From: Lepidodermella squamata
Taxonomy: Eukaryota; Animalia; Gastrotricha
NCBI GenBank assembly: GCA_047495785.1
Contig: JBLDXI010000015.1
Span: 3,844,001-3,908,000 of the forward strand
Length of the DNA: 64,000 nt
Direction of reading: 5' to 3'
The notes under the pieces are model-generated. The model was not told the DNA's origin, did no database searches, and worked only from the letters and a program-made list of their open reading frames with translations. This document shows positions 53,801 through 64,000 of this stretch, one piece after another (position 1 is the stretch's first letter; each line of letters begins with the position of its first letter). Both the position numbers and the translations under genes were made by a program.

Positions 53801-56800
53801 TTATTCATTATACGCGCGCGCTTTCATCCCGCGCCCCATCACCCGCTCGGTCCGTCGACCAGCAGCACCTGACGGCGACGGCGGCGACAAGTTTTCCCCA
53901 TCAAAAAATAATTATTTCATTACGCGTCGATGACGGCGCGGCTCTACCTAATACCAAATATTATTATGTTGTTAAACGCTTCGATTGTACACAGTTTCAC
54001 TTCCTGTCACATCGGCATCCGACGCCCACGATTCATCCTACTTACTTGTGCTTTCATTATTTTAACACGTTTATTTATAAAGGCCCTCCTTAGCAATTCA
54101 CGCCCGGCTGCGGTTATTCATACACATAAGTCAATCGATGATGACTTGGTTCAAGAGGAAATACCAGAAGAATTTCTACAGCAATAATATTGTTATTATT
54201 AATGTTATTGCTACTATTATACTTTGACACGGGCTTGTTGATATTTTCATTATTATTTCATCGAACCGCGACATTATTATAACGAAAATGACACCAGCAG
54301 TCCATCAAAGGCAGCAGCAGCAAATCAAATTTGCGGCTATAATTTTTGAGGCACTATGAAAATCATATTACATCATTATATGCCAGCATCATGTCATTTG
54401 CGGCCGAGAATTTTTTTCTCTCTGAAATTTCTGGTGTATACAAACACATTACACCAAATCAGTAGCGTTGGTGGGATAATGGAATTCGCGGACATTATCG
54501 AATCATTTTTTGCCTCATCAAACCCTACTCCATATATATTTTTACGCACCTGACTTGGATTTTTTTATGTGTCATCTGTCTATATAGCACAGTATATACT
54601 TCATCGTCCCTATCTCAGAAAGTAGTGGCGCAATTTTTTTTTATCAAAATAATACATCGTAGGCTGAGCCGATAGAATAAAATTCTCGCTATCGTTCACT
54701 GCGATTTTTGAAACCATTTAAATATTTGCGCAGCCTATAAGCTTACTTGTTTATAGGTACCCGTAATACATCGATGCATGATCAACATACGGCGCTCGTC
54801 GCGAAAACTTGGCTCCGAAAATGTAATCCATTGACAATTTTTTACAGCGATACGTATAAGTGCTTGCGAACTCATCATCCTGTGCGCATCTCGCGTGACA
54901 TTTTCCGATTAAGAGAGAGACAGAGCAATGACGAATTTACTCGAACCTCGACTAATTTTTGCAAACATTTTATCTCAGCATCCGTTCTCTTTTTATTGAA
55001 AATTTGACTGAATTTTGACCCGGTTAATTTTGCGACAGAAATTTTTAGAAAGTCTTAAAAACATTGATACATTTCGCAGGCTTCGACAAGGCCTCTTATA
55101 TGGCCATTTGTAATAATTACCGGCAATTCGGCGCCTGATCGAAGGCTTTGAATCTGGCGTGAGGTCGGGCCCTAATACCGGCGGCTTACACCTGTGCGGG
55201 GCGCTTTTCGCCACACGCCAACGTGTGCCTTTTTTATACGCCGCCACCAGCGTGTGCCTGCAATCTCCAAGTCGGCCTTATAAAGTGTTTTGAAGTTACT
55301 GCTGCTGCTGTGAAGTTACCATGAAAGACTGGGGTCATGATGCCGGGCATGGTGGCCAGAAAGGCGAGCGGAGTTCCGATGCTCAAAGTGCCCTCATGCA
55401 AGTCATCTGCACTCTACTAGCTGCACAAACGAACGACACCGTATATGAATGGTAAAAAATTATCTATTTTTTTTTCTAAGAAAAAATTACGGCGTTTGAG
55501 AGAGATTTTTGAAGCTTCCTTTTTTCCCCACCTACTCACCTGGCAACAGGTGCGTTTTGCGTAAACAGGGCGTATAGCAGATGTGTGTTTGATTAATTTC
55601 TGCTCGGCAAGCCAAAAAAGTTGCAATAAATCCGGTTTATTAATACGACGGCGAAGAAACAGCAGCCAACAGATGGTTTCAACCCGCAATTTTAATCATC
55701 ACGACTCATGCTGGAGAAAAAAAACCCGGATTACTCCTCGTCTCAAGAAAACGCGTTTAATATCGCCGTCTTTACTTTTAATCAAGCCACTAAAACCTGT
55801 GCGTAACTAATAATCCTTTTGTAGGTAACGTGGTTTCGGGGGTTTTCCGCCGAAAAATTACTGCTGTCTCTCTTTCTCGACCGTTTCACGTTTCTTTTAG
55901 TGCACGCTCGATGACTTTTTTCTGCAGACTATACCATTTTTATACAGCGACCATTTCTAATAATGAGATAGCGTGTTAAGGTGTATTTACCTTCCTTATT
56001 TTTTCGGATAAGAGAGAGATATACCCCGCACCGTCTGATTTGCTAGCGACCAAGCGTGGTGAAGAACTGACCACGTGCGGCAGCAGCGAGCGGCAAACAA
56101 ATTTCATCTGTCGATACCGATAACGCAAACTGCTGGCAGCGGCCATTTGCTTCGAGCGCGTGCGATAATCGCTGCGGCGGCGGGCGGGCGGGCGAAAAAA
56201 AGCGCGGCACAACGCGTGGTGTGTTTACTTGAACTAATTGCGGGCGAAACAAGCGCGGCTTCTGTCCTCGAACACACACTTTTGTAAATATTATTATTAC
56301 CATCATCGCCGGGCCGAAGATACTCGCAGTAATTACTCGCGGTGAAGATAACACTGATAGTAAGTAGGCTGGTATTATATAGATGAGAATAATAGACAGC
56401 AACGCGGCTTGAGAGCTGCCTTAAAAGAACGACGCGGATGTAGAAGAAAAAACCGGCGGCTCTATCAGCGCGGCATAATAATAATTTTTTTCACCTGGTA
56501 TCGCGGCGGAAAAAACGCGCTGCCGCCATAAATGAAAGAACGAGTGTTATTATTTATGAAGGATAGCGGCTCCGGATTGAGGGGGCGTCGTGTACGCGCT
56601 GCCTACCCGGCCGCCCCGTTTTGCTGCTTCTTGTCATATCCATATAGTATAGGTATCTTCGGACAAAAAACTGCCAGACTGTATACATTGCATCTTCGAA
56701 CATCTGCTGCTGCTTATTTTATTCTCGATTTATGTGCGTTATCACTCTATATATAGAGAGGGACTAACGCTGCACCTTATCCGCTGATTGAGCTAAACAG

Positions 56801-61481: not shown

Positions 61482-64000
61482 ATGGGAAAGCAAGATTTGC
61501 TCGAGCAAATCTTAGACATGCTGCAAAAGTAAGCTTCCTTGAAATCTCTCTCAAATGCGTTGATTTTTATTTTCAAATTTATTTAACCCCGAAAATTTAA
61601 CATTTTTTCATGATTAATCAAGAAAAATGCGGAAATGAGTAATCCGTGTTTTTGATGAGACAATAATTTTGTTGAATAATGACTATTTTTTATTTTCTTC
61701 CCATTGCAAACAGTATGCAGCGGAATGGTACAGGTCAGTTGGGGAATTTCAAAAACCCGGCTGATGCGTGTTCAGATCGAAGATGGTACATATTTACGGC
61801 TGCCTCGCTCGTCATCCTATTAACGGGTCTTCTGCTTATCGTGATAACGCGCCTACTGCTTTGGCTCATATTTTCGCCGCGCGACAAGGATAAGAAACGG
61901 CTCGAGAGCTTCTGCGATGCCTTCGTCAAAAGCCGCCAGTTCGACCAGCACTGGTGGGCGGAGACCAAGGCGTGGTCGCAGGGCCTCATCTCCGGCCAGA
62001 CGTCGGTCGGCAAAGTCATGGTTGCTACAACTTTTCTGTTCAGCGTCATTTCTCTCGTTGTCTACATGGTCGACACGTTATTGTACGCCTGATTATTTCG
62101 AAGCCCTGATTTTTTCATCAAACAATTGTTTCCCCCCTCACCTAGGTATCATGTCGAAAGCTGTATGCCCTGGAACGGTGCTTTCACCCGCCAAATAGAT
62201 CTCGTCCTCAACATGTATTTTCTCATCAACTTTTTCCTTCGGGTGAGTATTCCGATGCGTATATATCATGTTATTGATTGCGTTTTTCTTGTGTTTCTTC
62301 TCCGCCGTCGCGCCGCTGCTTGCTAGATTATGAATTACATAAACCTGTAAAAACGCGCGCCGATATTATTTTTAGTAGCGGCACGAGAGACTAGTCTGTA
62401 GAGGAGAAGAAAAAAATCAATTAAAATGAGCCTAATCAGGTGTAACTAATTCATGGTGTTTACATTTCACAGTTTGTTGCGGCTGAGGACAAGCTTATCT
62501 TCTGGACAAACATTTATTCGATTGTCGATTATTTTACCATTCCGCCTGTTATCCTCGAAACCGTCATGAACCGATCTTGGATAGGTAAATTTTCGAAAAA
62601 AAATTGAGATGAAAAATGATTGATGATTTTTCTTATTTTTTTCAGGACTTCGGTTCATGCGTGCCATTTGTTTTATGCAATTTTCGGACATTTTACAATT
62701 TCTTCACATTTTACGCACTGGCAACAGCATACGTTTAGCTCAGCTAGCCTCAATCTTCCTTACCGTTTGGGTTGCTTCAGCAGGAATGTTTTATTTGGTA
62801 AGTTGTGCTTTTTATCGATTATCAGCTCGCTAAAAATAAATTGCGTGTCTACAAAATTGGGACAGTAAAATCAGCCCACCTAGCGCGATACGTTGCTATG
62901 TCCATGGCTATTTGCGTAAAACGCAAACGCAAACGCAAAATGACGTATTTTCCGCTAGAAAATCGACCTAAAAACAATAATGATGAGAGGACTAAAAACT
63001 AGGTCACGCACTAGCCGAATTACGTGGAAAGGTCAAATTTTATAGCTAAAACAATTTGCATGACCTATAGGCAATAAATATGGAAAATGCGTAATTATTT
63101 CAGGAAAGTAATTTTAAGGAGGAATTTTTGAAAAATGATGGTAATTTTTTTATTTTATTTTTTTGCAAATATAGTTGGAGAATACTGGCGATCCGTTTTA
63201 TTCGTACCAAAATTCGCACGACATAGACTATTTCAACTGCATGTATTACCTCCTGGTGACAATGTCGACGGTCGGCTACGGCGATGTAACGCCGACGACC
63301 GTTCTCGGCAAGATTTTCGTTGTGTTGTACATTCTTGGCGCGCTCGCCATGTTCGCCACCTTCATCCCCGAGATGGTCGAGTGCATATCGACCGACAAGT
63401 ACGGCGGCGAGTTTGAAAAAGAGCCGAACAAGCCGCACATCGTGCTGTGCGGCAACATCGACTACCGATCCGTCGACAACTTCTTGAAAGACTTTTTACA
63501 CGAGGACCGAGAGGACATTAACATAACAACGGTGCTGCTAGATAAGCAGACACCGTCGTTGGAGCTACAGGCGTTGATGAAGCGCCACTTTACCAAGGTG
63601 CAGTTTTTTCGCGGCACGGTTATGAACAGCCGCGATTTGTGCCGCGTCAAGGTGAGCGAGGCGGACGCGTGTCTCGTGATCGCGAACAAGAACGCGGACG
63701 ACCCGCACGCCGAGGACATGGCGAACATCATGCGCGTGATAGCCGTGAAAAACTACTGCCAAAACATCCGCATCATCGTGCAGCTGCTGTGCTACTCTAA
63801 CAAAATCTACCTGATGAACATTCCCGGCTGGAACAAGGAGGACTGCATCGTGTGCCTGCCGGAGCTCAAACTCGGCTTCATGGCGCAGTCGTGCCTCGCG
63901 CCGGGCTTCTCCACGCTGCTCGCCAACCTGTTCACGATGCGCTCGGACAACGTCACCGACGACATGCCCGACTGGATGAAGGACTACGTTATCGGTGCTG
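61482..64000 (+). CDS. slo: Divergent Slo1/BK (KCNMA1-family) Ca2+-activated K+ channel, 5' part. Exons 61482-61528, 61714-62082, 62146-62242, 62473-62584, 62646-62797, 63175->64000
   Basis: Contains S0 (RRWYIFTAASLVILL), LISGQTSVGK, VDYFTIPP, LENTGDP and the pore TMSTVGYGD. RCK1 motifs are HIVLCGNI...NFLKDFLHEDR, ADACLVIANK, ANIMRVIAVKNY and ELKLGFMAQSCLAPGFSTLLANLF. The ATG at 61482 splices in frame to the exon at 61714. Confidence 0.95.

Follow-up and report, generated by a model that had tools for sequence, protein, structure and literature searches.

A natural cysteine at the R213-equivalent position of S4 in a divergent Slo1-type channel gene of the gastrotrich Lepidodermella squamata

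The stretch of DNA analysed here, called the window throughout (64,000 nucleotides of Lepidodermella squamata, contig JBLDXI010000015.1 of assembly GCA_047495785.1, positions 3,844,001 to 3,908,000 of the forward strand), contains on its plus strand the 5' half of a gene with introns. We found that the gene is intact and transcribed and that its product is a divergent alpha subunit of the Slo1 (BK) type; its codon TGT at 62669-62671 (plus strand) encodes a cysteine at the R213-equivalent (R4) position of S4. From the canonical S4 gating pair R210 is present, and R213 is replaced by Cys. Judged by sequence comparison, the change from Arg to Cys is an old one in this lineage, and strong purifying selection has since maintained it. 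As to function, we consider it probable, by analogy with characterised mouse channels, that the product is a Ca2+-driven, Mg2+-insensitive BK-type channel with a reduced gating charge, which would be carried by R210.

The S4 codon and the structure of the gene

The exon for S4, its linker to S5 and the beginning of S5 (62646-62797, plus strand) is entered in phase 1 after the acceptor AG at 62644-62645 and encodes G-LRFMRAICFMQFSDILQ, the frame translation of 62646-62797 being G-LRFMRAICFMQFSDILQFLHILRTGNSIRLAQLASIFLTVWVASAGMFYL. It carries R207 (CGG, 62651-53), R210 (CGT, 62660-62), C213 and D219. Because phmmer aligned this exon to residues 206-255 of human Slo1 without a gap (E 2e-12), the cysteine can be assigned to position 213; that the match is not due to chance follows from the adjacent exon, which matched solved BK channels at E 1e-110. 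According to the translation and the human Slo1 alignment, S4 of the window protein contains no new basic residue. A hidden alternative S4 exon in the flanking introns was considered and rejected, as nothing S4-like was seen in their three-frame translations and one transcript form was recovered.

In order to follow the codon in other data, four public runs were compared over window positions 61700-64000. In the DNA run X1 one contig spans 62597-62926 with zero differences and with TGT as the codon, while a nearby intron stretch was, by contrast, resolved into two haplotype contigs; the word depth of this run is about 60-75x, and as it possibly comes from the source sample it is not independent. 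Run X2, which belongs to a separate study (2015), gave a spliced transcript contig of 2,488 nt that carries TGT, has no differences over 62644-62796 and lacks all four introns, each removed at GT..AG sites. Thus, it can be concluded that the gene is transcribed and correctly spliced, and that its mRNA carries TGT. This evidence consists of assembled contigs, from which rare variants are dropped, so that a rare CGT allele could be missed. Pieces of the gene were also present in biofilm and wastewater runs. Two metagenome orthologue proteins, P0001 and P0367, likewise have Cys at 213 and both read GLRFMRAICFMQFSD; P0367 is a second orthologue variant, located on other contigs than the one that bears P0001. 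The first-pass annotation had placed an R213C-equivalent substitution at 62669-62671, and this placement holds in the ungapped human Slo1 alignment and in DNA, RNA and metagenome contigs; the confirmation of the codon in reads or cDNA which it had proposed came out in favour of TGT in both the X1 contig and the spliced X2 contig.

The other exons, all on the plus strand, were defined from the joints of the X2 contig, from translation and from alignment to known Slo1 proteins. The exon at 61714-62082 encodes S0, the S0-S1 linker (with D99 replaced by Ala) and S1 (K113, D133), as indicated by an X2 splice joint, the translation, and alignments to Aplysia and human Slo1; its segment 61955-62080 aligns to human Slo1 96-134. 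The S1-S2 loop and S2, with D153 and R167 kept, lie at 62146-62242 (X2 joints, translation, Aplysia Slo1 alignment), and R167 straddles the exon junction. The S2-S3 loop and S3 are encoded by 62473-62584, of which 62473-62583 aligns ungapped to human Slo1 168-204; here N172E, E180N and S196E are found, and D186 and R201 are kept. After the S4 exon, in which the DNA and RNA contigs show no difference from the window, the last exon runs from 63175 to 64000 and past the window end, and contains the rest of S5, the pore with TVGYGD, S6 and the greater part of RCK1; it is the segment 63175-63999 that gave the match to the pore, S6 and RCK1 of solved BK channels at E 1e-110. GC3 inside the gene ranges from 0.39 in the S4 exon to 0.82 in the pore and RCK1 exon.

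Two loose ends of the X2 contig indicate alternative 5' exons. One, at 61713, was located in the window as the 3' end of a far-upstream exon (55421-55450, plus strand) that is spliced to 61714. The exon ending at 55450 contains an in-frame TGA, the frame having been read by hand from the sequence, and a transcript of this form would therefore start at ATG 61715. The second is a coding mini-exon (61483-61528, plus strand) with ATG at 61483, the product MGKQDLLEQILDMLQ and the donor GT at 61529. This mini-exon and its ATG are conserved in the orthologous contig L001 (487-536), in which the codon that matches ATG 61715 is TTG; ATG 61483 is likely the main start codon. The two 5' exons, which seem to be driven by separate promoters, would give the channel two N-termini.

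The intron 62897-63187, which separates the S4 exon from the pore exon, is represented by two indel-rich haplotype contigs in the DNA run and by a low-depth RNA contig of 132 nt in which the strand is switched twice. An intronic hairpin was considered as the source of this RNA contig and rejected, since no inverted repeat was found when one was looked for; the contig probably stems from unspliced RNA or from a chimeric assembly.

The orthologue, the functional residues and the place of the gene in the family

The orthologous protein P0001 (481 aa, 99% identical to the last exon of the window) is encoded on L001, an ENA metagenome contig of 8,314 bp. With default megablast L001 gave a single match of 99 bp to the window, and with sensitive blastn all exons were found at 70-90% DNA identity. 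The idea that L001 belongs to the same species was rejected on this basis, as the exons are those of a diverged orthologue. Since its GC3 is 0.48, compared to 0.71 in the window, and since it lacks three of the four introns of the window (L001 667-2310 against window 61716-64000), L001 comes most likely from another species.

Synonymous differences between the two genes are saturated (pS 0.81), yet from S1 to RCK1 (residues 91-518) only 3 of 428 residues differ, which gives dN of 0.011. In the N-terminus, S0 and linker, 28 of 90 residues are different. The Cys codon is TGT in both genes, and R210 is encoded by CGT in the window and by AGA in L001. A shared Cys and a dN of 0.011 at saturated synonymous sites rule out an error, a private allele and a pseudogene. 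The downstream ORFs of L001 encode RCK2 and the Ca2+ bowl, QFLDIEDEDTPD, in which both aspartates are kept according to an alignment made by hand. Further down, at 5838-7880 of L001 (minus strand), a gene for a 680-aa protein with an ANF-receptor domain follows the Slo gene of this relative. A protein with canonical S4, P0006, was considered as the canonical Slo1 of the same organism; it belongs to another ENA sample and is therefore uninformative.

The architecture of the product is that of a BK channel. An S0 helix precedes S1-S6 (residues 17-154 of the orthologue align to Aplysia Slo1 10-156), and the same S0 and S1-S6 segments are found in the window protein by translation and human Slo1 alignment. 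The K+ filter reads MSTVGYGDV, aligned at human 287-292, and a Slo-type pore and S6 are present. In the window protein D133, D153, R167, D186, R201, R207 and R210 are kept. The first-pass annotation had listed the equivalents of D153, R167 and D186 as retained, and the motifs QIDL, FLRF (which spans the exon junction) and IVDY are indeed all present. The Ca2+ site of RCK1 is also kept (D362, H365, D367, M513), H365 and the numbering offset of the last exon having been read by hand from the alignment to solved BK channels; E535 falls directly beyond the end of the window, and P0001 keeps it. The Ca2+ bowl (QFLDQDDDDDPD, D895/D897) lies beyond the window end, and both Asp are present in L001 by hand alignment. 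Changes in the sensor region are D99A, R113K, N172E, E180N, S196E and E219D, and those in the RCK1 region are E374T, Q397K and E399Q. Thus all four ligands of the low-affinity Mg2+ site are replaced (D99A, N172E, E374T, E399Q).

We assessed the placement of the gene in a careful IQ-TREE analysis (63 rows, 448 columns), from which the very long rows P0162 and P0173 were left out. The gene falls within a well-supported Slo1-type clade (47 rows, support 100/99), in a basal polytomy that it shares with an Owenia group, a Tubulanus/Helobdella group and a tardigrade-type group. It lies outside the canonical Slo1 and Slo3 group, which is itself weakly supported (80/90), and the nearest sequences by identity are canonical arthropod and nematode Slo1 (57%).

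Compared to Slo1/BK alpha subunits (KCNMA1, Drosophila slowpoke, C. elegans SLO-1, Aplysia Slo1), the window protein shares S0 with S1-S6, TVGYGD and the RCK1 residues D362/H365/D367/M513; in the orthologue E535 and a Ca2+ bowl are present. Solved BK channels are the best match of all exons, and identity from S3 to RCK1 is 53-57%. The window protein differs from these subunits in having C213, replacements of all four Mg2+ ligands, E180N and its own long branch. The same change at the same aligned position has been engineered in mSlo1 R213C; this mutant, like R213E and R213Q, is a single mutation in a mammalian background with intact Mg2+ ligands, whereas C213 of the window is natural, ancient and set amid about 45% sequence divergence. 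Also comparable in S4 are invertebrate Slo proteins named 'alpha-1-like' or 'slowpoke-like' that likewise have a residue other than Arg at 213, usually keep R207, R210 and D186, and have one or both acidic E374/E399 ligands replaced, as in the window protein. They are 34-50% identical to it, belong to separate lineages, and none has Cys213.

The textbook example of a Slo channel that has no gating charges in S4 is Slo2. Membership of Slo2 (Slack/Slick, KCNT1/2) was rejected, as the KCNT1 match is far weaker (E 1e-28 to 1e-29, compared to 1e-105 to 1e-110 for Slo1) and the window protein retains R207 and R210. The named Slo3 (KCNU1) sequences, from Spea and Python, retain R213 and group within the vertebrate Slo1/Slo3 clade.

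Position 213 across the Slo family

A HMMER search with P0001 against 1.84 billion cluster representatives gave 490 matches at E <=1e-30, the nearest of which, besides P0001 itself, were 52-54% identical. Position 213 was mapped in all retrieved proteins. Arg213 was present in 79 of the 80 homologues with an identity of 50% or more along a stretch longer than 250 residues, the exception being a cestode protein with Ile. In the 44-50% identity band it was found in 21/32 (three of the 11 exceptions are faulty gene models), and below 44% identity a minority of the proteins had it. When 71 Slo-family representatives of 50% identity clusters were compared in an alignment of S3 to RCK1, D186 was kept in 67, R210 in 64, R207 in 55 and R213 in only 20. 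Representatives that do not have R213 retain R210 in 43 and D186 in 45 of 48 cases, and on a quick tree the state at 213 (Arg or not) changed at least 9 times. The first-pass annotation had set the cysteine against a canonical arginine and had suggested an alignment of metazoan Slo1/Slo3; the canonical state stands for homologues of at least 50% identity and does not extend to the family representatives. The rarity which that reading implied was overstated, since residues other than Arg are common at 213 among divergent members of the Slo family in many phyla. On these sequences C213 is only mildly unusual, as many divergent relatives in other animals also do without R213.

The residues that replace R213 are diverse. 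Ile is found in Acanthaster planci and Spirometra, Ile and Leu in Owenia fusiformis, Gly in Tubulanus, His in Macrostomum lignano and Colossoma, Gln in Pocillopora damicornis and Tyr in Clupea. Cys213 was otherwise seen only in three distant, poorly aligned representatives. Tyr is also the residue in four Paramacrobiotus proteins (P0110, P0129, P0136, P0144) and one Hypsibius protein (P0122); all retrieved tardigrade Slo-like proteins have Tyr213, and on this sampling a whole phylum may be devoid of the R213 charge in its BK-type channels. The mirror image of C213 was observed in P0362 (Helobdella robusta), P0133 and P0140, in which R210 is naturally Cys and R213 is kept. In mouse R210C the midpoint of the sensor is near -355 mV (PMC2151507), and by this analogy the sensors of the three channels may be permanently activated. 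A literature search found no paper on natural loss of R213 or on gastrotrich Slo channels.

The Mg2+ site was followed as well. The acidic pair E374/E399 is absent from 62 of 63 non-R213 sequences, the exception being a lamprey model whose S4 looks mis-predicted, and it is also absent from 43 of 91 sequences that bear R213. As the site is incomplete in 43/91 R213-bearing homologues, it marks the canonical subclade and not the family. We do not claim co-evolution of R213 and the Mg2+ site, because the pair changes only 3 times on the tree and an independent-pairs test is without power. To say that R213 and the Mg2+ site are both lost is a fair description of the window protein; it is not put forward as co-evolution.

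Predicted gating, alternative readings and meaning

The effect of this substitution is known from mSlo1. In comparison to the wild type, R213C lowers zJ from 0.58 e to 0.28 e, zL from 0.30 e to 0.19 e and zT from 2.62 e to 1.31 e, and moves VHC(J) from +173 mV to +475 mV; single openings only were seen at +180 mV in 0 Ca2+, and macroscopic current in 50 uM Ca2+ (Ma, Lou and Horrigan 2006, PMC2151507). In gating-current measurements the charge was lowered only by R210Q and R213Q, which identifies these two residues as the gating charges; R213Q moved V0 to +394 mV, and about half of the gating charge was assigned to R210 (Carrasquel-Ursulaez et al. 2022, PMC9231616). Both studies bear out the statement of the first-pass annotation that R213 is an S4 gating charge, the charge of R213C being half that of the wild type in the former. 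R213 also interacts electrostatically with bound Mg2+, and activation by Mg2+ is largely gone when R213 is neutralised (PMC2174156, PMC5677106).

The published parameters were entered into the HA model, for which KD of 11 uM and E of 2.4 were assumed. In 100 uM Ca2+, between -40 and +40 mV, Po changed 4-fold for R213C compared to 58-fold for the wild type, and V1/2 was +168 mV compared to +54 mV. For R213C, Ca2+ increased Po about 2,000-fold at 0 mV, and with the mouse R213C parameters Po at 0 mV was about 1% even in 100 uM Ca2+. Such a low Po in the mouse background, taken together with strong selection on the gene, suggests that the channel of this gene probably gates differently from the mutant.

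Given the values of mSlo1 R213C and the retained residues of the Ca2+ sites, weak voltage dependence and Ca2+-dominated gating, as supposed by the first-pass annotation, would be a reasonable expectation for the window protein. Its sensor would have roughly half of the usual gating charge, the charge left in S4 being that of R210, and Mg2+ would not be able to activate the channel through the R213 route. At physiological voltages opening would be governed mainly by Ca2+. The very positive sensor midpoint seen in mouse R213C would probably be offset by other changes in the sensor or the gate; such compensating changes are probable because the gene is so tightly conserved. On the alignment, E180N, N172E, S196E, D99A and R113K are candidates, any of which could retune the sensor. 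The extension of the mouse R213C phenotype to a protein that is about 55-57% identical to characterised Slo1 is uncertain.

The compensation might go further than this. If R210 and the other sensor changes together gave near-normal, BK-like voltage dependence, the Cys would be near-neutral, which we regard as unlikely though as the most serious of the alternatives. R210 and D186 are nearly invariant in the non-R213 representatives, R210 bears about half of the charge (PMC9231616), and single S4 mutations move the midpoint by hundreds of mV either way (PMC2151507), so that it is easily retuned; the window protein also carries E180N, N172E, S196E and D99A. Yet a sensor deprived of one of its only two gating charges should still show a reduced slope, and no basic residue was gained by S4. 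Less probable again is that the gene is a modulatory paralogue in a genome which also contains a canonical Slo1 with R213, its subunit acting alone in special cells or, by putative co-assembly, lowering the voltage sensitivity of mixed tetramers. Slo-like proteins with and without R213 coexist in Macrostomum (R, H) and in Spirometra (I, R), and the gene is not placed inside the canonical Slo1 clade, but the sampled tardigrade Slo-like proteins are all without R213, which indicates that lineages without it may exist.

A regulatory role of the thiol itself seems very unlikely. Here reversible oxidation, S-modification or binding of a soft metal in the inner crevice would switch the charge of the sensor. 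As reported in PMC2151507 for the work of Hu et al. 2003, internal MTSES reaches mSlo1 R213C at -80 mV; moreover, the Cys is conserved in both lineages (window and L001), and residue 172 of the former Mg2+ site, a neighbour, is now Glu. The redox idea, which the first-pass annotation had also raised, starts however from the presence of a cysteine and nothing else, the residues I, Y, G, H, L, Q and W found elsewhere at 213 point to loss of charge and not to a need for a thiol, and the other Cys213 occur in three very distant, poorly aligned representatives. The fullest form of this idea, that the only BK channel of the lineage lost the charge of R213 jointly with the Mg2+ site and that the Cys became a reversible redox or metal switch of voltage sensitivity in an otherwise Ca2+-gated large-conductance channel, is held to be just as improbable. 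Finally, that the codon represents an artefact, a rare allele or a pseudogene is barely credible. CGT to TGT is one CpG transition and the read evidence is all from assembled contigs; TGT was, however, recovered from different studies in DNA contigs, in the 2015 transcriptome and in a separate ENA metagenome assembly, and the open frame, the correct splicing and the low dN at saturated synonymous sites speak against a pseudogene. The Ca2+-driven, Mg2+-insensitive channel with charge remaining on R210 is therefore the reading we prefer.

R213 is central to the debate on voltage sensing in BK channels and is also the partner of bound Mg2+. The near invariance of R210 and D186 across the sequences surveyed, set against the scarcity of R213, fits R210 as the core gating charge. 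A natural R213C channel maintained by selection would be a ready test of the remaining sensor, R210 with D186, and of how evolution offsets the loss of R4. The known architecture of the family is unchanged by these results. The wider survey may outweigh the single gene in importance, as it supplies many natural variants for biophysics, including the natural R210C channels of a leech.
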